A DNA stretch of 64,000 bases, from NCBI RefSeq assembly GCF_000150275.1, contig NW_002060948.1, positions 5,378,336 through 5,442,335 on the forward strand, written 5' to 3'. A program made the position numbers and the translations under genes. Origin of the DNA: Trichoplax adhaerens (lineage: Eukaryota > Animalia > Placozoa). The stretch's first letter is position 1, and the number at the start of each line of letters is the position of its first letter. Below the pieces are notes generated by a model, which worked only from the letters and a program-made list of their open reading frames with translations, did no database searches and was not told the origin of the DNA. Below are positions 1 to 25,679 of this stretch, in pieces.

Positions 1-555
1 GTTATATGGAAATATCCCGATGAAAATCGTGTAAATATGGATAACTCTATCAAGACAGTTCAATGGCTGCCACAAAACGATCTTCTTGGACATCCAAATG
101 TGATAGCTTTCGTTACACATTGTGGATTAAATAGTGTCCTTGAAGCTGCCTATCATGGCGTACCTATGGTAGCTATTCCTGTAGCGGGTGATGGATATGA
201 TCATGCTCAAAAAATTTTAGCTAAAAATATAGGCGTTGTTTTGGACGTTAAGACGATTACTAGTGACGAAGTATTTAATGCCATTATGCAAGTGACAACT
301 GATAAAAGTATTATTGCAAGTGTTAAACGAGTAGCTAAATGCATTAAAAATAGACCTAATAACAGAACACCAGTTGAGGAAGCTGTAGACTGGATAGAAT
401 ATGCACTAGGCAATGAAGGAGGACATTATCTTCGAACTATGGAATATACAATACCATGGTATAAACTATATTTAATAGATATTTTCACTATATTTTTTAT
501 TGCACTTTTTATAATTCTAAAAATCTTTCAATTCATACACAAGAAATTTTTCTAA
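1..555 (+). CDS. UDP-glycosyltransferase (UGT/GT1 family), C-terminal part; 5' end lies outside the window
   Basis: Frame 1 is open from base 1 ([14 protein letters not shown]...). It contains the UGT signature [39 protein letters not shown], a C-terminal TM helix and a KKxx ER-retrieval end (HKKFF*). Confidence 0.95.
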
Positions 556-1941: not shown

Positions 1942-4900
1942 CTATATATCCCATAATCTTGTACAACAGTCGCTGCCAACAGATACGAATGAAGAATTGT
2001 CCAACCAGACAATACCATTCACAGGGGACATCGGATGGGCTCCTACAGATATATTTAAAGTTAAGTATAATCGATAACTGTTTCCATTAAGGTAATACCT
2101 AATTATTTATAAAATCTCCTTCATTACTACAATATACAGGCCTAAACTTTTAGTGAGTCGGAACTACAGTTATACTGTACCTTTGACGATTGCTTTCTTG
2201 CCAGCATCGGCAACTGACCACAATATAACATTGGAATCAATGCCACCAGATGCAATATATGTAGAATCAGGTGACCAAGCAAGGTACGATACTCGGGCGG
2301 TATGATAACTCCAACTATGTAGTGTCTACAATATATTTCAAATGACATTAATAATCGGAAATACAATAATCGCTAAGTTGTATAATTGAAGATTCATGAT
2401 ATCAAATAATGCTTCTTACTACAGAGTAAGCCTTTGTTGCCATTACGGTGAGACATCTTTGAGAATCTCCAACAGCTAACAATTCGCCATTTGGCGAATA
2501 TGCCAGATGCGACGGAGTACCTCTCACAGATACCTTAGTTATTTCTTCCAAGTTATACCCGCTTACTTTGTAAACATACACGAAATTTTCCTATATTCAA
2601 ATATTAAAACTACTTACAACATATTTCTGTAACAAGTGTTATTTTGCCAATTTAATTTAGCTATCTTGTACCTTGCTACTTCCAACAGCTAGTTCACAAG
2701 TTACAGAGTTGAATGAGATACTGTTTGGCTCATACTTCACAAGTAAACTATTTTCTTTTTGGCCTTCATTAGTGATCGAGATCTGATATCATAACGTAAA
2801 TATAATAGAAACGAAATTACCGTTTGATAAACAAATCTTGAAAGGCCTTGTCTAATTTCATGTATTATGTACCTCGTTCATGCACGCAACAAAAATAATG
2901 TTGCCTCCCCCACTACACAAAGCGCGAGGTTGAGAGTCTAATTTCAGGGAATAAGAACTAAAACAAAGTTATAAAAATCGATTATATTTTCACTAAAAAT
3001 AATTTCTATAGTAATCTACTGCTATAACATACCTGTACTCGTTAGATGCGGTTGAAAACTTTTTCATGCAATCGTCAATTCCTACGGTGTAAACTTCGTC
3101 TCCAACGGTAAGCATAGCGTTAACTTGATTGTTATGACCGACGCCTTTAATTTCATCGTTATCTCCAGTGGTAGTATCCCAAGATAGTGTCATAGGTTAA
3201 AGACATAAAACAATCTAAAAATTCATTTAATTCTGTAATGGTAACGTTATCTATACAGTAAAATACGGGTTACAGTTAGACGATCGAAAAGATATTTGTT
3301 AATCCGGTATAGTCTACAGTGTATATCTTTTTCTTGTCAGCCGATAAGGTTATAGCAGTAATAGCCTTTTGATGTCCCTATATTAACAAATAGATGATTA
3401 ATATGAATAAGTATTGCTTCAAAGAACGTTTAAGTTTAGAGCAATTGAACCTTTATGATTATACCTTAATAACTTTCGTCAAAGCTGAATTACTAAAGTC
3501 TAAATAGTTTATGTAGCCGGAAAGTGATACTGATAGAATATGATCCCCTTGCCACAAGCATCCCAATTGTTGATCGAGTAACTTACTGCCTACGTTAATT
3601 GTACTAAAAAATTTTCATGTCAAAAAGATGTAAATCCAAATTTATGTATAAATTCAATAAGTAGTATAAGCGACTAAATATTTACCCCATCAGCTCAAGC
3701 GTATTAGCATCCCATAATTTGACAGATTTATCCGCGGAACAAGTAATAAGTTGGGCTGAGTCTGCTTTCCAGGCAGACTGTTTTAAAATAAAACGAATTG
3801 ATATAATCAAGTATCTTTCCTAAGCTATCATGATATAGCTATTATTAATACTTTTATAACTACTGTGGAAAAATGGATAATTAATACATTACTCTACCCC
3901 ATAGATTCCACCACTATGAGCGGGATTGCCAAGTTCTCCTTCTTTTTCTGCAGTCTTACCGTTATACAAAAATGCTCTTCCATCTGCTCCACCAGATACG
4001 AATTTTTCTCCATTAGGAGAAAATTTAATGGTATTAATAAACTTAGAATGGCTCTATGAATAGGTAAAATAAGCTTTAATAAAGTATTCCAGTATAACAG
4101 TAAAATTAATCGATCACTAAATAAATGATCATTACATTGATCTTTTGATCGAATTTAAAAGGTGGTCCAGAATGAAACGCGATCTGCATGTCTTCTCCTC
4201 CAGTAGCAACCTTGTATGGTCGTGATGGTTTGAAGTCAACACAAGTTATTGGCTTATGATGACCAGTGATAGTACCGACGCTACTTCCGCTGTCCCATAA
4301 GAAGGCGCTCGCGAACCTTATCAATACAAAATATAAGCAATTAGACTTTTTATCCCTATGAAAGTATTATTGTCTGAATAGAGCCCTACTTCTCTCTACC
4401 ATCACCAGCGGTAATGATCCTCTTACTGTCTGGTGACCAACAAAGATCATAAATCGCTCCGTGGGGTTGATACTCATACTTTAACAAATGTTCACGCTGT
4501 GTAGTGTCCCAAATTCGAATTTTTCCTCCAGTGTCTGAATATAGGTAGCAGTAACAATGAATATAGTCGTAATTTTGATCACATTCATATGAAGAATGGA
4601 GAAATCGTTCTATGGAATTTGCTTACCAGCAGATGCAATATAGAACCCACTCGGAGCATAGCGTGCAACTGTTGTTTGCAGAGCATGTTGAGCATAAACA
4701 TCACTTTCAGCTAAGTTCTGTGGACGTTAATATCATTAGTTAATTTTTGATTTAGTAATTAATGATTTACTGAGTCAATTTGACGATTAATAACACATGA
4801 TGTAGAGCATTCAAATTCTTTATCATTACAGTAGTATTATATATCAAATGTTGTCAGGATTTTGTAGACGCCTTTGCAAGGAATTAAAGTTGTATAGTAC

Positions 4901-7162
4901 TGTATACCGATCTCTAGATGAAAGTAATTCAATATTTGTATCACGGTATCTAAGTGCTCCAAATACCTCGATATTTCTGATTATAACATGGTTTCCAATA
5001 CAATATAAGAAATTTTTGCCCTTAGGATCGCCACCAATCTGAACACTTCGTCCACGTTCTGTTCGAGGCAAAGCTGCAAAGCAGTTCTCTAGAAAAGATT
5101 TAATGTATTAATCATTTTAATATTATTTTTAATTTTATAGCTATAATAACGACTACCGATTAATCCTTAAATTAACGAGAACATCGGCAGATATCACACC
5201 TCTTTACTATGTCTACTGAGTTAAATTTTAATTTCTTATTGCTCAGGAATTTCTTGTACGTCAAATAGCATCCATGAAATGTATTTCTACAAGAATGTTT
5301 ACAACATGAACTATGATCCTTTATTTCTTACAATGGAAAAATACTGTACCAGAAAAGCAATTTAGCTTCTGATTTACAAAAAGTTAAGAATAGTAAAATG
5401 TGTTTTCTGTCAGAGCAAAAATAGTAGCAACTACTCCACTCTACATTTCATTTCTGTAATATAAGGTTTGCATCCAAATTCGTAGTATCTGGTGTTAGTA
5501 TTGGTAGTTAACCTAGCAGAGTTGTAAATCGTCACACCTGATCTGATACTTGATTAGCTTACGACTTTATCATGACCAAATCAAAAGTATAGTAGAGTAC
5601 TTTCCGTAGTACTTGTTATGTACTATCATTATTCTTATTTTCTAGCAACAAGGTTGAAGATAACTTGATCACTCACAATTCAAGAGATTGCATGCTTGCA
5701 GTCTACCGTACCAGTGCTACTGTCGTTAATTTGTTAATTATTTATTTGAACCGTAATCTTGAAGTCTATTCAATTTGCTAACAACAATCAATTTATCAAG
5801 AAGTAAACTTGGTTTAGCTTAAAATTTAATATGATAGACTAGATGATGATTGTCTATTTGCTTGTTTCATTAGCAACATGTTCTAAAAGAGCTTGCTTAC
5901 GAGAGATTACACACCTATAGCCTATCGTAGCAGGACTAAAAAAATTGTAATTATTTGACCCCTAATCTTGAAATCGATTCAATGAAGCTCACAAATCTAT
6001 CTGTCAAGGCAAGTCGATAAAAATTGACGTTGGATCAGCTTTAAACTTAGCACGATAGAGTCGATCGACATTGTCTCCTAGTGTATTTCAATAGCAATAC
6101 ACTTGGAGACAACTAAACTTCCAATTTAAGAGATTAAGCGCCTGCAGCCTAATGTTCAAGGAGCCTAGGACTACTGAATTATTATTATTTGACCCCTAAT
6201 CCTGAGACCAATTCTAAGACGTCAATCCCTCAAGACAAGTCGATAAAACTGGATGTTGGATCAATTTATCAGCCTACCATAGCAGTATTACCGTCATGAA
6301 TTAATGAATTTACATGACCCGTCATGCTGGAAGTCGATTCAATTTGCTAACAAATCTATTCCATCAAGACAAGTCGATAAAAATTAAAGTTGGATCTACT
6401 TCCAATTTCATACGATAGAGTCGATCGATATGGTCTCTATGCGTGTTCCAATAGCAACACGCTTGGAGATAAACTAAAAACTCACAATTCAAGAGATTAC
6501 GTGCCTGCAGCCTAACGTACAAGGACTAATCAATTATTTGACCCCTATTTCATGATGCCAATTCTTCAGGAAAAGTAGATGAAATGTAATGCACGATCAA
6601 TTTATAACTCAACATGATAGAGTAGATCCACATTGTCTCTTTGCTTGTCTAATGAATAACATGCTCACAACTGAAGAGACTATATGCATACAGCCTACCA
6701 TCACAGAATATTACGATGAGGAATATTCATTTATTTGACCCTCAATCATGACATCAATACAATTTATGAAGCAATCTATCGATCAAGATTAGTCGATAAA
6801 AATTGACGTAGGATCCATTTCAAAATTAGCAGGATAGAGTCGATCGGCACTGTCTTCTTGCGTATTCGAATAGCAAGACGCTTAGAGAGACAAATTTAAC
6901 TCCTAATTTAGCAAATTACACGCCTACAGCCTACTGTACCAGGACTAACGAAATCACTTGAATGAATTCGTTAGCCGTTAATCCTAAGGGCGATTAATGT
7001 TTACGCGATCGACAAGTAGATAAAATTAGACGTTGGATCAACTTAGAACTTAATAGGATAGCGTAGATCGACATTATCTCCTTGATTGTTCGTCTAACAA
7101 CATGCTTGAAGACAACTTACTCCCAATTTAAGGCAATATCACTTACTTAAATTACAAGACAT
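1942..7162 (-). CDS. WDR1: WD repeat protein 1 / actin-interacting protein 1, multi-exon
   Basis: Exon 1 is 7147-7162 (GCCATG TCT TGT AAT TTA A|gtaagt). Exon 2 is 4967-5088 ([30 protein letters not shown]). Exon 3 is 4627-4717 ([14 protein letters not shown]). Later exons give [30 protein letters not shown] and [21 protein letters not shown]. The last exon reads [32 protein letters not shown] (TAG at 1942-1944). Confidence 0.95.
3187..3295 (-). other. U12-type (minor spliceosome) AT-AC intron in WDR1
   Basis: On the minus strand the intron starts ATATCTTTT, has TCTTTAAC about 10 nt from the 3' end and ends ...GACAC. Splicing joins YTGLT-I-SWD in frame, aligning with AIP1 DGHINYWD. Confidence 0.9.
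5640..7135. repeat. Degenerate ~220-bp tandem repeat (about 7 copies) filling WDR1 intron 1
   Basis: The core caagtcgataaaaattgacgttggatc...gatagagtcgatc...tagcaacatgctt...ttatttgacccctaatc recurs near 5800, 6011, 6237, 6371, 6572, 6791 and 7013. The frames examined have stops. Confidence 0.85.
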
Positions 7163-10619: not shown

Positions 10620-12235
10620 TTCTAGCAACAAGCCTGAAGACAACTTGGTCACAATTCAAGAGATTACATGCTTGCAGTCTACCGTACCAGTGCTACAGTA
10701 GTTAACTTATTATTTGAACCTTAATCCGAAAGTCTGTTCAGTTTGTTAACAACAATCAATTTATCGAGAAGTAAGTAACTATTAGCGTTGGATTAACTTA
10801 AAACTTAATATGATAGAGAAGATCATGGCTACTTCCTGACTCGTTTGAATAGCAACATAGTGTAAAGAACTTGGTCATAAATTCATAATTGAAGAAATTA
10901 CAGACGTGCCGCCAGCTGCACCGATACTACAATAAGTAATCAATCTGTCAAGATAAGTGGATAAAAATCGATGCTGGACTATTTTAAAAAATTATTAATA
11001 TGATAGAATGGATCAACGTTGCCCCTTACTTGTTTGAAATTCAAGACATTTAGAGACAAGTTACTGACAATTTAATCCTAAGGTCAATTTTAAGGAATCA
11101 ATCCGCCAAGGCAAGTCGATGAAATTTGACCTAGGATCTACTTAAAACTTAATATGATAGCGTAGATGATGGTTGTCTTGTTGGTTGTTTGATTAATTAG
11201 CATAATTAGCAACATGCTCTAGAACAGCTTGCTCACAAGAGATTTTATGCCTGTTAGCCTACCTTACTAGGACTAAAGAATGGTAATGAATTGACCCCTA
11301 ATCTTGAAGTTATTTCAATTACCTAACAAATCTATCCGTCAAGGCAAGTCGATAAAAATTGACGTTGGATCAGCTTTAAACTTAATATGATAAAGTAGAT
11401 AGGTGTTTTCTCTTGGCGTGAATTTAAGGGATTATGCGCCTGCATCCTAATGTATAAGGATTGATGAATTATTTAACCTCTAATCCTGAGACTGATTCTG
11501 AGACGTTAATCCCTCAAGACAAGTAGATGAAATTAGATATTGGATCAATTTATAATTCAAGATGACAGAGTAGATCAACGTTGTCTCTTAGCTTGTTTGA
11601 TTAGTGGCATGCTCACAATTGAAGAGACTTCACGCCTTCAGTCTACTTTGCTGAAGCTGCATCATGAAAATTTTCACAGGGGGGGGGGTGATTACCCCAT
11701 ACTTCTAATTTTGGTATATGGTAAGCGCATCCTTCCAATTGCTCTTTTTTCTACTGAAAACTCCCCCACACAATGTAGCACAGATTTAAGAATTACGGTA
11801 ATTAACGACAGGAATATTAATTTAGAACTTTTTTTAGGGGGGGGGGCGCTTACTCAGTACTTTACGGTCATTAATTTATTTGACCAGCAATCTTGAAGTC
11901 GATAAAAATTGACATTAGATCCATTTCAAACTTAACACGATGGAGTCGATCGGTGTTGTCTCCTTGCTTGTTCGAATAGTTAGTAGTACACTTAGAGCTG
12001 AACTAATCTCATGAGATTACACGCCTGTAGTCTACCGGACCAGGGACTGATAAATTAACCTTAATGAATTCTTTAGCCCCAAATCCTGAGGTCGATTAAT
12101 GTTTATCCGACAGACAGGTAGATGAAATTGGACGTTGAATCAACTTATAACTTAACAGGATAGCGTAGATCGACATTATCTCCTTGCTTGTTCAACTAGC
12201 AACATGCTTGGAGACAACTTGCTCACAATTTAAGG
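10620..12235. repeat. Second array of the ~220-bp intronic tandem repeat, inside the WDR1 duplicate
   Basis: Same core motif near 10770, 10955, 11112, 11346, 11521, 11896 and 12116. Confidence 0.85.
11650..11857. mobile_element. ~208-bp MITE-like insertion with two G10 runs
   Basis: Absent from the paralogous array at about 6690-6730. Flanked by TACTTT at 11644-11649 and 11858-11863. Weak inverted ends CTGAAGCTGC / GCGCTTACTCAG. G10 tracts at 11679-11688 and 11837-11846. Confidence 0.55.
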
Positions 12236-12319: not shown

Positions 12320-12650
12320 AGGAATAGAGGAAAGTTAGTTAGGAGCGGGGAACAATTTTTTGTTTAGTAGTCCCTGCTCTTCTCTTTGGGAAATAGACGA
12401 AAGTTGATTAGGAGTGGGGGCAACTCTTTGTTTAGTAGTCCTTTTCCTTCTCTTTGGGGATTACGGGAAAGTTGATTAGGAGTGGGGAGGGGGAGACAAT
12501 TCTCTGTTTAGTAGTCGTTGTTCTTCTCTTTGGGAATGCGAGAGAGTTGATTAGGAGCATGGGACAATTTTTCGTTTAATAGTTCCCGTTCTCCTCTTTG
12601 AGGAATAGGGGACAGTTGCTTAGGAGCGTGGCGGGATAATTTGGATGTTT
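12320..12650. repeat. ~60-bp minisatellite, about 5 diverged copies
   Basis: Unit approximates gggaatag.gaaagttgattaggagtggggacaatt.tttgtttagtagtcc.tgttcttctcttt. It begins where homology to the WDR1 5' region ends. Confidence 0.9.
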
Positions 12651-13262: not shown

Positions 13263-13354
13263 TGCAACCTCGTAGTTTCATCAATCATAGTAGCCTCTTG
13301 ACATTGAATGAGTTACCTGCTATGACATCATTACAAGAACAAATAAAGGTTGCA
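13263..13354 (-). promoter_or_regulatory. SECIS element (form 2) in the SELENOK 3'UTR
   Basis: Minus strand: UGCAACCUU..AUGAU GUCAUAGCAGG UAA CUC..GAG GCUACUAUGAU UGAU G..GAGGUUGCA. This gives helix I (UGCAACCUU/GAGGUUGCA), the AUGA/GA quartet, helix II of about 10 bp, unpaired AA and an apical CUC/GAG mini-stem. Confidence 0.88.
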
Positions 13355-13518
13355 TTGAGGTGCTACCAAACTTTTCAGTTTGGTATTTAGCGCTTGCCAA
13401 TAGTTAAATCAGCAAGCGCTTTACCTATAAAAATGGAAAACACACCGTCAATCATGCCCATCCCAGTATCTAATGATTTCATCGATGATCAAGTAATATC
13501 AACTTAGGATTCTCATTT

Positions 13519-16148
13519 TTACCTTCCTCATCCGCCACCGCCACCAGCCATGGGAGGACTAGCTGGACCATCTATTGGTAGGAGTAGAACACATCAATGA
13601 TTCTCACTTCGAAATTAGTTTTATAGGCGTAAAATCACTTGCAAACTAATGTAAAACATACTTTGTCCTCCTGGATTAATTCTGCCAATCTTTTTCCGAG
13701 GCGGTCCCGGCGGTGGTCTATAAATGAACGATTATTTTAACTTTAGTTCTAGAAAATCTTTAACGGTCTAGTAGACAAGCGATTTTACAAGTATTATATA
13801 GAAAAGTACAGTAAGTTTAAGCTCTTGCAAATGGATAGTCGAATGTGAAGATAATTCAGTGATTTTAGTTTACATATTGAAATGGCCAAAGCATAACACG
13901 TAAACGAGTTGTTTTAATTCTTAATATTATTAAATAGTCCATAAGGAATACAGTACAAAGTAAGTGATTCTACATTATGTTCAGTGGAAAAAGTAGAACA
14001 AAATTAAGCTGTAGCAATGGATGATCAAATGCAATGATAATCCAGTGACTTCAATGCACTTATGAATATAGTTAAACATAACATGTCAACAGTTATTTTG
14101 ATATTGTAATACTAAATAGTCTATAAGGAATAACAGTACAGTAGTAAGTCATTCCATAGTGTAGAGCAGAGGAAATTAAATGAATACAAAGTTATCGTCC
14201 AATATGAAGCTAATCCAATAATTAATTCTACTTTTGTGTCATTATCATTATAGAGCACGATGTGTCATGGCAAAGACGGACCTTTTATCTGGTCGGAAAG
14301 TCGGGGTTTCTTTCTTCTTGTCGTTATCAAGCTAATTGGAGAAATTGTAGTAGTATTAGTAAATAATTTTTATATCTATCATTCTTTCAAATAACGAAAA
14401 AGAAAGTACATAGGCTATATCACGATAACAATGAAAGAACTTACCAGAAGCATCGACTTAATGCTGTTGTAAAATAAGATAGAATAAAAAATTTTAGATT
14501 ATTGTAATCAATAAGCCATTTCATGACAATGATGTTGTTATTCGTATTGCTGTAGTACTACAACATTACTAGGGAGAGTCTTTATGGTATGATATTACAA
14601 ACAGTAGTTGATGTTTCTATAAGCATTCAACAATTAAACTAAATAGAGCTTGTATTGCAAGAAATGAGTATATAAGCCAAGTCTATTCTTTCCATATTAT
14701 TTCACTCTTAATACTTACAATAGCACCATGCACGCTACAAATGTTGTGAAGAAATTCTTTATAGAAGACAGCGTCCACGGGCTGTTTCCTTGAACGAGTT
14801 GACCTAAGTATATCAATAGCATCGTTAAGTCCAATGTAAAAACTTATCTAAGTATTTCTAGTTACTAAATTAGATATACACTTATGATGTAAACTCCTAC
14901 GTATGCAATATCCATGTTGTCAATGTATTCTTACGTGCATCTAATCATATGCAATAAGAATTTGCGAATGAATGATGCGAAAGTTTATATTTAAAGACCC
15001 ATCACTCATTCTACTCTACTAGTCAATGCTAAAGGAAGTAGATGAAAAAGTGCTTCTTTTCTATAGCACCGTCCAAATCATATCACCATGATAGCGAATC
15101 GATAGCGAGATGAAACTCAACCTACTCATTTCTAGCTATAATTCTGTTTCTCATGTCTATCAAATATGTTACTCCTGTACAAATGGATTTTATACGATCA
15201 TTATGGTTATCATTATTGCTATCCTTGTCGGGAAGATTTACGCGTATACTGTTTATCCATCCACAGGCCATTTCTGTTATGTGCGACCTGACTAGAGCGC
15301 TGAATTGGTAGTCTAGTATAAGGTTGACTTTGTGCTTATCCTCCTATTAAGTTGAGTTATTATTTCAATGGATGGAAGAAACGGCTATGGTACCCAATTG
15401 AATCAGACTTGGTGTTTTTAATATTGCTAAAGCAAATGGTTTGGTCATTGGATATTACATGATATTTTTTAGCGTTGATTCTACGACAAAAATGTTGGAT
15501 TCTATTCATAAATTATCCTATGTATACATATACATACACACAAGTGGAGAGAATGATCATCTCGTAAAGGAAAAATGTGATGAAAGCCTATACAGATTAC
15601 TAGTAGTGCACTTTACAGTAAGTTGGTGATTATTCTTTTCGCTACGACTATACAGATAGAATCGCAAGTGAGATATTTTCTAATGCATTCAGTGTAGATT
15701 CGCAGCAATATACTCGTCAAAATAATATTGAATTGATGTAGAATTTCAAGTCGATTCTCTGCTCATGATCTCATGATGAAATTTCCATACAACACATACT
15801 GTACAGGAAGAAGAATCCATAGTCCAGTATCAAGCCCATTATCCTACACGTCTACACTAGTGGAGAAAATAATCATCTACTAGATGGAATTGATACCAAT
15901 TTGAAGTCGACATTCTTCTGATGATCAAGTTTCCTTACATCCTTTCCATGTCAACACACAAGATGAAGAGTAACTGTATATTGAGACTACGTGTATTCTT
16001 CTTGATAATAGTCATGACTGTATAACGTCGAACTGGGGAAGAAACGGCTAACAAAAGATTTTACATTTTGTGAAGTTGGATGGGTATTTTTCTTGCTCCA
16101 ATGCATCACACTGACAGCTATCTTACCATTTTTGTCAATGTAAACCAT
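13519..16148 (-). CDS. SELENOK: Selenoprotein K, 94 aa, Sec encoded by in-frame UGA at 13528-13530
   Basis: Six phase-consistent GT-AG exons: 16127-16148, 14719-14803, 14445-14463, 14282-14331, 13662-13717, 13519-13571 (285 nt). Protein: MVYIDKNGQLVQGNSPWTLSSIKNFFTTFVACMVLFIKSMLLLDNDKKKETPTFRPDKRPPPGPPRKKIGRINPGGQNGPASPPMAGGGGGUGR*. It matches the SelK pattern (MVYI..G..SPW, single TM, PP..PPR..GRIN, PPMAGGUGR). Confidence 0.95.
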
Positions 16149-17703
16149 GATGAGCCAAGGCTACGTCCAAGCTCTGTTAAAGTCCTACAACAGAAAACAG
16201 TGATGATTCTATTAATTAACCCAACAAGTGCCTCTTCTCATCTATGCCATCAACACGCCGCCACTACACGATAGTATTCTGCTTAGTCATAACCGATGAT
16301 TGCAATGGATCTTACCCAAAATCTTCAAGGAAAAGGTCAAGATTTCTTAGTTTAATGTCTACTTTTTGGTCTTTCCAACAACCTTTTTTTACCTGGTAGA
16401 GACGATGATGAGTTAATGGAGTTGATTCTAGACTCTCAACGCCTCCATCTTGATGACGATTTCAATGATGAACAGTTGACGTCACTAACCTAGTCCTCGA
16501 GCAGTAGCATGAGTACAGTGTCCAATACATCAGTTCGTGTGTAATATTGTTACTTTAAAAGAGTTGGCGAAATGGATTTCACTAAGGGGAAACCAGCATT
16601 ACTAAGCAAAACAAATGGTTGATGCTATCGTCAGTATCAAAAGATGATCCAGTCTGCTATACTAAAGTGTACAAAGCGCACTACTGTACTGCACCATAGG
16701 CTACGATTGTTCCACTAGTCCACTCTGTCTGGTCGTCTGATACCCGGTCCATCGGGCAATGGACAATTGGACAATTGGACATGCTGAGAATTGCTGATTT
16801 TGGCACAGCCATTCATTAATATGTTCATCAATCATCTGTATTTGTAGTCCAAAGAGTTGGTAAATTGTACAACAGTGTGCCACAGGCTACTCAAGGTTGT
16901 TCCTCTTGTAGTAGGACTTGGTACTATGCTCAAGTAGAGTAGGAAGCATCGCCATTTTGCAATACTATACAGAAGACTACTTTCACCAGTATTGAATCAA
17001 CACAAGCGATTTGTACAGTACTAGACTGGTCGAGAGCTCGTCCCTAATAATCACTATACTAGTAGAAGAAGACTTGGACACCCTCCGACAGACGGACTTC
17101 CCTTGCTTGTCGAAAAATGGCTACTTAGTATGGTTCTTTTGTGTCTGTTTCCTAAATCACTGGTACTAATTTCAAGAACATCGACACATCTTATAGAACT
17201 GCTTCTAAGCGTAGCTTAATAACCGATAATATGATTTAACGTAATATAACTTTATTTAGAATAAATCAGTCCGTTCAAAATCTACCATCTCCATACTTAA
17301 GTACTGCCATCATGATGGGTTTGGCACAATAGTGGAATAAGATGAGATCGATCATGTCTGTCCGTCCAAGCGGGAGTCTATCCTGGACAAGCATATTTGT
17401 AAACAAGTCAGTGAGAGGCTATGCGTTATAGTAGGATGCAATACAGTTCTACAATTCGATACAGAACAGTACTGTTACGAGTATTGAATCGGCACCACAT
17501 TAAGTGGTCAGAAGCTCCACCAGCTTAAAACGAATGCAAGACGGGAAGAAGCTCTTGGAAATGAGGTAAAATTAATATTGGTAAGAGCTACAACATCAAT
17601 TCTTAACCGTGCTAGTCTGCAAATAGTGCAAGAAAATTCATTCCACTTCAATGATAGACAATTGATGTGCAGTATAGGAATTTGAATACTTTGATCGGAT
17701 AGA

Positions 17704-19715
17704 ATGGGTTTGGGCAGAGTTGCTATCGCATCCATTTCCATTGCCATCACTATCTTATTAGCCTTAACCAAGTCGTGCCATTCAGCTAAAATATTATTAG
17801 TCGTCCAACACTATCATAGCCATGCACAGGTAGTTGCAGCAGTTGGAGATGAATTGCATGCCAGAGGTCATGCAGTAACGATGGTTGCAGCTCAAGCTGT
17901 CCAATCCTTGTCCAGCAAAGAATTTAAAGTTCGATATTATCAGACGCCTGTCAGAGATCAAGACCTCGCAGATTGTACCGCGCAATCATTAAAAAATCAA
18001 GATCCTCTACTATCAGCGTGCAATCGGCTTTTTCGAGATGATATTCTTGCTTTTACCAATGGAAAGGAGCTACTGGATGAATTAAAGCGTGAAAATTTCG
18101 GTAAATGATTTTGAGTAACATTACATAAATACCAGACATGCGTCTATTACGCCATCTTAGCTTGCAAAAACCTTCAACGAAACAATAGAGCTAGTTCAGC
18201 CAGGGACTACTCAAGTAAAAATGTTACCCCCTTTCCACCGTCTACTTTCTCTCTCTCTCTCACACTATAATCCCCAGAGATGATATAGTAAGAGAGAGGA
18301 GTGGGAGACGATGGAAGAAGGGTAACACTTTTACTTGGGCAGTCTCTGGTTCAGAAATGTGAAGTGGGAGTTTTGCAAGCTGGAGTGGCAATAGTATGCA
18401 TGCATCGCATTGCATCGAGTAGTGCTAGCAACCGACTCTTTCTAATCCTAGTAGCTTGTATAGTATAGCACTTTACGCTTATAGTACTTCTATTAATGCG
18501 GATTCTAATTTTCAATGACCAAACTCTTTCTCAATTTGTCATCGTCTAGATGGATTAATTTGCGACGTAGCAAGCTATGCATGCTTGATTGTTGCTGAAT
18601 ATATCAACATCAAAGTCCAAGTAGATGTATCACCAATCGGTCTGCTTGATCCATTAACAACTTCGCCATATCATATACCAGGTCCTCCTGCCTACGTCCC
18701 ACAAATGGCAGTCATCGCGACTAACAAAATGAATTTATATCAACGCACACAAAATGTCATCTTTTACGGCATTATGATCACTCTCTTACGAACCTTTATG
18801 TTTAGTAACATGTATCGGTCTGCTAACATAACTAATTTAGGCTTCAACTCACCACCTAGCTTTGAACTCAGAAGATCCACATTTCTGATTGCTAACGGTG
18901 ATTTCGCTGTTGATTACCCTCGACCAATTACACCAGCAACAAAAGTAGTAGGCCCTTTATTACCAAAACCCGCTCAAACTCTTCCTGACGACTTACAACA
19001 GTTTGCCTCTGCTAACAAAAACGGGACTATTGTAGTCTCCTTTGGTTCAGTCATGATTGGTTTAAAATATGTCACTGACCTAGAAATATTTTTCCAAGCT
19101 TTTGGTCAATTACCTTACAATGTCATATGGAAATTTAGTGATAAAATCACCCATCACATTCCCGATAATTTAAAAGTCGTTCAGTGGTTGCCGCAAAATG
19201 ACCTACTTGGCCATCATAATGTCAAAGCTTTGGTAACACATTGTGGCTTAAATAGTGTCCTAGAAGCTGCCTACCATGGTGTACCTATGATTGGTATTCC
19301 TATTGCTGCTGATGGAATGAATCATGCTCAAAAGATTATAGCTAGAAATATCGGTGTGATACTAGATATCAAAACGATGACGAGCAATGATCTATCCAAT
19401 GCAATCATCAATGTCGTAACCGATAAATTTATCGCAGAAAATGCTACAAAGATATCAGCATTTATCAAGAACAGACCTAATGGTAGAACACCAGCACAAG
19501 AAGCCGGAGACTGGGTTGAATTTGCGTTAGGTAGTGAAGGAGGAAATTATTTACGGACTGAAGAATATAATTTAAGATGGTATGAATTGTATTTGATCGA
19601 TGTTTATGCAGTTCTTATAATAATATGTTATTTATTCATTAAACTAATGAAATTAGTGTGGAAAGGAATTGCTAATGTATGTTGTCGTAGAAAAGAAAAG
19701 GTTAAAAAGTCCTAA
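17704..19715 (+). CDS. UDP-glycosyltransferase (UGT/GT1 family), 2 coding exons, 520 aa
   Basis: Exons 17704-18100 and 18550-19715 are joined by a phase-1 GT-AG intron. It has a signal peptide, catalytic-His region HYHSHAQ, the [10 protein letters not shown]...[17 protein letters not shown] signature, a TM helix and a KVKKS dilysine end. Confidence 0.95.
18137..18402. repeat. ~265-bp imperfect palindrome (fold-back/MITE-like) in the UGT intron
   Basis: Outer arms CATGCGTCTATT..GCCATCTTAGCTTGCAAAA / TTTTGCAAGCTGGAGTGGCAATAGTATGCATG. An inner 45-bp arm starting at 18199 matches the reverse complement of about 18306-18350 at 36 of 45 positions and continues through CT/AG tracts to a short loop. 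Confidence 0.9.
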
Positions 19716-23537: not shown

Positions 23538-25679
23538 TTTGACAAATAAGAAAAAGGATATCTATACTCGATCACCATGGACATTCTTGATAAAGTCAAA
23601 TCAAAGTATGCTTGTACTACAGTATACCCGTATGTTACGAGTCATGGACATCATCGATTTCAAAGAATCATCACCAAATTGTATTTTTTTGTATTATAAT
23701 TGTAATCTTGCATAGTAGGCGCCTTAATGTTACAATTATTATTAATAAACTGAATCGTTTTATGTTACATTCAATGATGATTGCAGACTGTCACTCAGAA
23801 GGAAATGATACCTGATTGTATCAATTTACTGCTTGACTATTTATTGTGGTTTCGATCGCTTGCGGCGTCGTAAATTATAGATTATTGAGCATAATACAAG
23901 TCTTATTTCAGTGGTATATCATGAAATTTCGGCAACTCCTGTTCGTGAATGACAGCTTTTAATTCACTACCGAGTATACGTATGTCACGTACGAGTATAT
24001 CATAAATTCTCGATTAACTAAGGTGTTCTGAATTATAGTTTGCTTGGTATGATATTCTGACTACTGTACGTATATGCATGTTTTCCAACTCGACAGTTAT
24101 CTTCAATATTGTAAACAATTATATTCATACATACACGAATGTCAACAAGAGTCAAATAGGCGTTCGCATATTAGTGTAAGTTACGCAAGAATAACTGCTT
24201 CATTGAGCAGCTCCAATTCTGTTAAGAACTTAAGTATGTGCATACGTAAGTGTATATTCAAACCTATCATTAATCCGATATGAAATCACCTATTAATCCG
24301 AAAACCCATTAAACTTATTGCTTACAACACACCAAGACTAAAAGGACTTGCAAAGCAAAAATTCAAAGCATCGATTGATCAATGATTAATATATACTTTT
24401 GTTGAAGTGAAGATTGAGGCAGGTAACTTGATACGGTGAATCACCGATTATCTCGTTCGCACTATTGAGTGCGATCTCACATTTAGTTACTAAAGTAAGA
24501 AATACGCAACAGCTGAGAAATAAAATTACAAACTTAATATCGCTAAAGTCAATATCCATGACTTAATATTTTCTTTACATTTGATCATCAGTTAGTTATT
24601 GTAATAAATACTACGTCAATAATATCATATAAAACATCCGTTTCAAGCCACTAGAATTCAAAATAAAAAATGTGTCAGCTAAGACACGTAAATCAGATAT
24701 CAGCTAATTTCAGACAAAGATCACACAGCAGCAACATTGAAAAAGACAATCAGCATTTATTTGAGTAATTTGTCGATAAGTCAACGAAAACAATTTTCGG
24801 TATCTGTTAAAATAATGTAGAAATTGTGCATCGAACATTCTCTCGAAGTTTCAACTGACGAATCATTAAATCTAGCATTCGTAATAGAACTTAATTATAT
24901 TTACTTAAGTCGTACTGATACAAAGTATAATTAAGTCATAAATATTTATCAAATGTTATTTAAATGGTATCTGTATAGTTTTTGTTATATCCAGAGTGAT
25001 AAAGATTTATGTTCTATAAAACGGTACTTTTATGAGATATACGAATCTATTAATTGCCCAACTAAATGTTAGTGCTATACTGTACTGTACTAGCGAACAA
25101 AATCTCTACCACCTGCATTTGATTAATTCCGACAGCTATAATCAGTATTTCTTCTACAAAGAAATCTGTAAATTACTAATCATTGAATCCATGCTTTTAA
25201 GCCCGAATTTATTCATTTCTACGGTACTGAGCCGGAATAGACATAAACGGCAAGTAAAATACAGTTAGTTAAAAATATCGTAAGCTAAATAGAAATTTTT
25301 AGAAACATTTCTAGTGTATGCCTGTGCTATACTCAGAAGACAACGAACTAAACACAGTTAACATCTTAGGCAACATTATTACTCCACAAATCAGTTACTG
25401 CGGAAAACATGAAAGCTATTTTTTTTTAATTTCCTATAATATAAGATTTCAAAGATTTCATTGCTGTTTATGCTTATGCATTTACTCCCGATCAATGTAT
25501 AATGATCACTGTCAATTTTAATAATTTACAGTACACAATTACTTGTACTATAACATGAATACATTTATGAACGATCCAAAGGAGCAATAACATAGCACAT
25601 ATCTTGGATATATTCTCGATGATTAAAATTTGAGACAAATTAATTATCAAAATTTATTCTGAGTTAATCAATTTATTAC

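Follow-up and report, generated by a model that had tools for sequence, protein, structure and literature searches.

A probable selenoprotein K gene of six very small exons, with a plausible form-2 selenocysteine insertion sequence, in the placozoan Trichoplax adhaerens

Selenoprotein K (SelK, or SELENOK) is a well-studied selenoprotein of the endoplasmic reticulum (ER) membrane, and the locus described here raises the question of whether the placozoan Trichoplax adhaerens lacks this protein or whether its gene has been overlooked. The published selenoproteome of T. adhaerens comprises 28 selenoproteins in 13 families, and neither Table 1 nor the supplementary gene table has a SelK entry for this species, whereas each of the five other invertebrates has one (Jiang, Ni and Liu 2012, PMC3473315); the count of 28 genes was given again by the same authors in 2013 (PMC3828610). 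No report of the gene emerged from our full-text search of the literature, in which Trichoplax or placozoa were combined with SelK, SELENOK or selenoprotein K. In a stretch of 64,000 nucleotides of T. adhaerens (contig NW_002060948.1, positions 5,378,336 to 5,442,335; hereafter the window, whose own positions are used throughout), we found on the minus strand a gene that is very probably the selenoprotein K gene of this animal, with a plausible form-2 selenocysteine insertion sequence (SECIS) downstream of its stop codon. The minus strand was read directly and the exons were translated one by one, which gave the following features:

16127-16148, minus strand: coding exon 1, 22 nt, with the ATG; encodes MVYIDKN and the first base of a Gly codon; donor G/gtaaga
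14719-14803, minus strand: coding exon 2, 85 nt; encodes (G)QLVQGNSPWTLSSIKNFFTTFVACMVL; the membrane helix begins here
14445-14463, minus strand: coding exon 3, a 19-nt micro-exon; encodes (F)IKSMLL, where the hydrophobic segment ends; acceptor acag/ and donor /gtaagt; phase 0 is restored
14282-14331, minus strand: coding exon 4, 50 nt; encodes LDNDKKKETPTFRPDK, a basic linker; acceptor ttag/, donor AG/gtccgt
13662-13717, minus strand: coding exon 5, 56 nt; encodes (R)PPPGPPRKKIGRINPGGQ, a Pro/Gly-rich tail; acceptor tatag/, donor AA/gtatgt
13519-13571, minus strand: coding exon 6, 53 nt including the TAA; encodes (N)GPASPPMAGGGGG-Sec-GR-TAA
13528-13530, minus strand: in-frame TGA, codon 92 of the gene, the predicted selenocysteine (Sec) codon
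13519-13521, minus strand: TAA, the stop codon of the gene

The six exons total 285 nt, which is 94 codons and a stop, their running phases (1, 2, 0, 2, 1, 0) lead to in-frame joining, and GT...AG borders are present in all five introns (1323, 255, 113, 564 and 90 nt). A preliminary description of this DNA, made from the letters alone, had proposed six exons of 19-85 nt spliced in phase to a protein of 94 amino acids (aa) that ends PPMAGGGGG-UGA-GR-UAA, and both proposals agree with what we found, as the C-terminal reading at 13545-13519 is GGGGG-TGA-GGA-AGG-TAA, with the TGA at 13530-13528 and the TAA at 13521-13519. The ending U-G-R, in which U is Sec, is characteristic of the SelK family, and by our arithmetic the chance of finding Gly-Arg-stop right after a UGA is about 3e-4. 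Judged from the translations, exons 2-3 encode a hydrophobic run, FFTTFVACMVL(F)IKSMLLL, and exons 4-6 encode a tail rich in P, G, K and R. It was also observed that the list of open reading frames (ORFs) of the window, whose G+C content is 28-40%, holds none of at least 70 aa over the gene, and that the sole listed ORF there, of 53 aa, is exon 1 reading on into intron 1; the earlier remark that no entry of the ORF track covers the gene was thus borne out. Intron 4 carries a diverged direct duplication of about 182 nt, in which matching is now limited to a 26-nt core (13925-13950 and 14107-14132), at 88%.

The assignment to the SelK family comes from exon 2. The 27 residues of this exon alone have a single match in Pfam, to PF10961 (SelK_SelG; E 0.012, 16.6 bits, profile positions 8-33), and since the match begins at profile position 8, there is room for the eight residues contributed by exon 1. 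For the orthologous exon 2 of a diverged placozoan (contig L002, see below), SelK_SelG was again the sole Pfam match, with 15 bits and an E-value of 0.039. When the whole 105.6-Mb assembly of 1414 contigs was searched with PF10961 in six frames, two places were found, exon 2 and one on contig C1395; the latter, where a hydrophobic, AT-rich stretch that contains stops matches by chance, was rejected, and exon 2 therefore marks the sole SelK locus of the genome. The identity given in the preliminary description is in this way supported by a unique match at fitting profile positions, which recurs in the diverged placozoan. A Pfam scan of exons 4-6 gave no match because these exons are of low complexity and too short. 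Searches with exon 2 in other collections were likewise without a SelK match: a 31-aa piece of exon 2, too short a query for a representative library of 1.8 billion proteins, retrieved two unrelated repeat proteins only from that library; a word search with the 42-aa exon-2 ORF gave no candidate, proteins of 91-142 aa being outside its length range; the best score for the exon-2 part in the ESM Atlas was a meaningless 0.75; and a degenerate DNA pattern for the helix that exon 2 encodes had no match in the JGI metagenomes. One of the two repeat proteins from the representative library (P0121, 956 aa) was rejected as a SelK relative, as it has only a short GQLV.G..PW motif in common with the exon-2 piece and is unrelated. 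This protein looks secreted and contains eleven copies of ...GGGFLGQLVPSGSPWPAS... and a repeated GFLGQLVPSGSPW motif.

Relatives of the locus were found through the neighbouring TRMT61A-like gene. The contig of Trichoplax sp. H2 (NOWV01000136.1, here L001; assembly GCA_003344405.1) is 98.9% identical to the window over 5.3 kb, and of the 56 differences in these 5.3 kb none lies within the 285 coding bases and one lies within the SECIS, where at position 13271 a U.G pair of helix I becomes U-A and pairing is kept, in what is a comparison with a near-identical strain only. Three metagenome contigs from ENA (L002, L003 and L024) belong to a placozoan with 77% identity in TRMT61A. Comparison of L002 with positions 14000-17800 of the window gave two significant alignments only, and these are exon 1 (E 6.5e-7) and exon 2 (E 4e-16). 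In L002 exon 1 reads MVYVDKNG and exon 2 reads GQLVEGSGQWTMSSIKDFFTAFVACIVL; the DNA of exon 2 is 78% identical and the splice sites are at identical positions. The introns, by contrast, can no longer be aligned, and intron 1 of L002 has about half the length of that in the window. Over exons 1-2, 11 synonymous and 9 nonsynonymous (mostly conservative) codon changes were counted, with no insertion or deletion. None of the three metagenome contigs continues past exon 2 (they end 45 nt beyond it), and the comparison covers exons 1-2. The annotation of the H2 contig contains a gene model at this locus, on the same strand, which is unnamed, has 142 residues and has no Pfam match on record. Its 3' end (L001 position 838) maps to position 13528 of the window, which is the last base of the TGA, and the annotation therefore halts at the Sec codon, without Sec-Gly-Arg. 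This model, together with the empty SelK entry for T. adhaerens in Jiang et al. 2012, is what had been anticipated when it was suggested that annotation would miss the gene or truncate it at the UGA.

A hairpin had been expected about 165-255 nt downstream, and one was observed 178-254 nt beyond the TAA, with its AUGA 199 nt beyond the UGA. Its parts are as follows:

13265-13341, minus strand: SECIS-like element, form 2, from the fold and a pattern scan
13338-13332 with 13274-13268, minus strand: helix I, seven pairs
13331-13328, minus strand: core AUGA, which faces UGAU; the 3' GA is at 13282-13281
13326-13317 with 13293-13284, minus strand: helix II, nine standard pairs and one mismatch
13314-13313, minus strand: AA motif, 13 nt after the core
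13312-13310 with 13297-13295, minus strand: apical mini-stem of 3 bp, CUC/GAG, under a 12-nt loop

The mini-stem above the AA motif makes this a form-2 element, and the quartet U.U, G.A, A.G, U.U can form. The AUGA/GA quartet, both helices, the AA and the mini-stem are all present, in agreement with the earlier claim of a hairpin with all SECIS hallmarks. The unconstrained minimum free energy (MFE) structure of an 86-nt fragment, 13345-13260 on the minus strand, is the SECIS fold (-14.9 kcal/mol); for a 96-nt fragment around the hairpin the MFE structure differs and its stability is no better than that of shuffled sequences. The chance expectation was estimated with a custom scanner for pattern and pairing, run on the window and on 60 dinucleotide shuffles. 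Under a strict setting (at least 9 of 10 helix-II pairs and at least 7 pairs in helix I), the threshold of which was chosen after the site was known, the window contains one match, the SelK hairpin, against 0.117 per 128 kb in the shuffles; with the same post hoc threshold, the chance for one strand of a 500-nt 3' untranslated region (3' UTR) is about 5e-4. With the loose pattern, 6 sites were found in the window and 4.7 in the shuffles, and the loose matches are therefore noise.

The genome also contains components of a selenocysteine system. A tRNA-Sec was found with 78.1 bits and anticodon TCA (ARAGORN), SepSecS is present as six collinear exon matches, and in-frame Sec-TGA codons were observed in GPx genes and in 11 deiodinase genes. 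In a deiodinase cluster (contig C1408), a SECIS-like match at 2830-2896 (+) of L020, beside one deiodinase gene, has a GUGA core instead of AUGA.

Several results weigh against a SelK gene with a functional SECIS at this locus. The 16.6 bits of exon 2 lie below the 23.3-bit cut-off of SelK_SelG, which is set for whole proteins; a score under the cut-off is expected here because the one exon scored is a third of a small protein. A covariance-model match had been set beforehand as a test of the SECIS, and the Rfam model SECIS_1 (RF00031, gathering threshold 35 bits) gave no match at the hairpin: not at that threshold, and not at E<=10 when 381 nt and 1.7 kb were scanned. With this model the hairpin scores below about 14 bits, compared with 20-22.5 bits for three other Trichoplax SECIS elements, and it is thus atypical for SECIS_1, having UAA for AAA and a 1x5 internal loop. 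Furthermore, neither of two home-made covariance models gives a match at the hairpin that reaches significance over the whole window (E about 1-2). Controls for SECIS_1 gave these results: in the whole 105.6-Mb genome, of a species with 28 published selenoprotein genes, no site reaches 35 bits and only two pass E<=10, the SECIS elements of two GPx genes score 21.9 and 20.3 bits, and a match was obtained at only one of the 11 deiodinase loci with an in-frame TGA (22.5 bits). Hardly any of the SECIS elements of this genome are detected by the model, and its failure at the SelK hairpin therefore carries little weight. SECIS_1 has almost no power in the Trichoplax genome; even so, the score of the hairpin, lower than those of the three other elements, counts against it to a small but real extent.

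The two home-made models were built from Trichoplax SECIS elements with the SelK site excluded, R1 from three sequences and R2 from six, and were run with filters off. The SelK hairpin scored 15.0 bits with R1 (rank 2 in the window, E 1.8) and 16.7 bits with R2 (rank 3, E 1.0), with nine of nine helix pairs standard in the alignments to both models. Held-out true SECIS elements scored similarly, at 15.3 bits for GPx_a with R1 and 12.5 bits for the element of deiodinase locus L011 with R2, and rescaling of the E-values to a 400-nt 3' UTR would give about 0.003-0.006. The matches that ranked higher in the window were discarded: the top R1 match at 25130-25193 on the minus strand (20.2 bits, E 0.11) has AAUGAU...UGAU and is probably due to chance, four of its nine helix pairs being non-standard, and the R2 matches at 512-577 and 14315-14392, both on the minus strand, in which AUGA is not intact and/or helix pairs are broken, were regarded as noise. 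The first of these sites lies about 500 nt downstream of a gene for a 1246-residue KH-domain (vigilin-like) protein. In our reading, the SelK hairpin can be reconciled with the Trichoplax SECIS elements, and no available covariance model is decisive.

These results bear on the alternative that the locus is a real SelK homologue in which the UGA is a plain stop, the product being a 91-residue form without Sec that ends GGGGG and the hairpin being a chance look-alike. The absent Rfam match, the window-wide E-values of about 1-2 from the home-made models, the loose SECIS-like patterns at chance frequency and the public H2 model, which treats the UGA as a stop, would all fit such a protein. However, the codons after the UGA give the family ending Gly-Arg-stop, the hairpin is of a kind that shuffled sequences yield very rarely under the strict setting, and the Sec system of the Trichoplax genome is large; a plain stop is therefore very improbable. 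Neither do we give much credence to a decaying or unexpressed copy, a pseudogene that has stayed intact by chance, which is highly improbable in view of six exons in frame with canonical splice sites at what is the sole SelK_SelG locus of the genome. In addition, L002 retains exons 1-2 with their splice sites although its introns have diverged beyond alignment, no exon differs between the H1 and H2 strains, and the H2 annotation has a gene model at the locus.

A different question is where the protein begins. The 142 residues of the H2 model equal 91 plus 51, and the H2 gene range begins about 630 nt upstream of the ATG, which would suit a longer N-terminus encoded by exons from about 16782 that are spliced in just before the ATG; an AG at 16162-16161 would permit an in-frame junction. 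In contrast, in-frame stops stand directly upstream of the ATG in both placozoans, a TAG at 16163-16161 in the window, five codons upstream, and a TAA in L002, two codons upstream, and these stops indicate that MVY(I/V)DKNG is the conserved start. No AG occurs between the stop and the ATG in L002, and an extension therefore cannot be conserved; moreover, the match of exon 2 at profile position 8 suits a start at MVYIDKNG. A longer N-terminus thus appears improbable. The approximately 51 extra residues of the H2 model were probably obtained through the AG at 16162-16161, and on the sequence it is unlikely that they are part of a real protein. We accordingly retain the reading of a SelK gene that starts at MVYIDKNG and in which the UGA is recoded.

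Starting from the observed gene anatomy, family signal, SECIS architecture, Sec machinery and conservation of exons 1-2, we infer that splicing, Sec insertion and the cellular role of the product would be as follows. In vivo, the five GT-AG introns would be spliced out to give a message of 94 codons. The protein made from it would have its single hydrophobic membrane segment, the product of exons 2-3, after a short N-terminus (MVYIDKNG...); the tail that follows would be basic, rich in Pro and Gly, and probably disordered. In the pathway established for eukaryotes, the SECIS quartet would be bound by SBP2, through which eEFSec with Sec-tRNA(Sec) would reach the ribosome at UGA-92; this codon would then be read as selenocysteine, with termination at the TAA three codons on (Sec-Gly-Arg-stop). 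Because the UGA is in the last exon, failed recoding would give a product three residues shorter and not decay of the message. By homology, the protein may be a single-pass protein of the ER membrane with partners in ER-associated degradation and palmitoylation.

With respect to the question posed at the outset, it is possible, and we propose it tentatively, that SelK was not lost in placozoans, contrary to the published table, and that SelM, SelN and SelS, which that table also gives as missing from Trichoplax, are perhaps hidden likewise. As part of the same tentative proposal, SelK may have been overlooked because its coding sequence is split by micro-exons and because its SECIS departs from the usual model in the UAA and in the 1x5 internal loop. 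Addition of the gene would remove an apparent lineage-specific loss of SelK at the base of the animal tree, and it would illustrate concretely how, in a genome rich in A and T, a coding sequence cut into micro-exons and a SECIS of unusual type can escape both gene finders and the Rfam model. The value of the finding is corrective, since a published table shows SelK as absent and a public gene model is cut short; the biology of SelK itself is not new.

Some further features of the window were observed around the gene. UDP-glucuronosyltransferase-type genes at 37-555 (+) and 17704-19715 (+) flank the region; the latter is arranged head-to-head with the SelK gene, with the start codons about 1.5 kb apart, and this layout is also found on L002. 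At 12323-12626, some 640 nt beyond the SelK SECIS on its downstream side, there is a minisatellite of 68-nt units (4.3 copies, 72% matches, also with a 144-nt period). Between a WD-repeat gene and the SelK gene lie 8 kb that are otherwise poor in genes, and two plus-strand ORFs there, at 6589-6738 and 11540-11896, begin with almost identical peptides, that of the latter being MDQFIIQDDRVDQRCLLACL; neither has a Pfam match, and the pair looks like a dispersed repeat or a transposon remnant.

When the gene is set beside known systems, the SECIS can be compared with those of the GPx and deiodinase genes of the same genome (PMC3473315), with which it shares the AUGA core, the N followed by a helix II of nine pairs, the A-rich bulge, the 3' UGAU/GA, the AT-rich stems and the form-2 apical mini-stems. 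In contrast, the five reference Trichoplax elements have AUGA-N-11 nt-AAA, whereas the SelK element has UAA in those columns and an apical part that is five bases longer. Compared with the H2 gene model at the same locus, our model has the Sec-Gly-Arg that the H2 model is without, and it does not have the approximately 51 additional N-terminal residues. The gene differs from animal selenoprotein K genes in the presumably longer run of five Gly before the Sec, in its six very small exons, one of them of 19 nt, in a SECIS that Rfam SECIS_1 does not see, and in belonging to a family listed as absent from its species (PMC3473315). In other respects it resembles animal selenoprotein K, with about 94 residues, an N-terminus of MVYI..., one hydrophobic segment in the first half, a basic Pro/Gly-rich tail, the Sec in third-last position ahead of Gly-Arg-stop, and a 3' UTR that carries a plausible SECIS.

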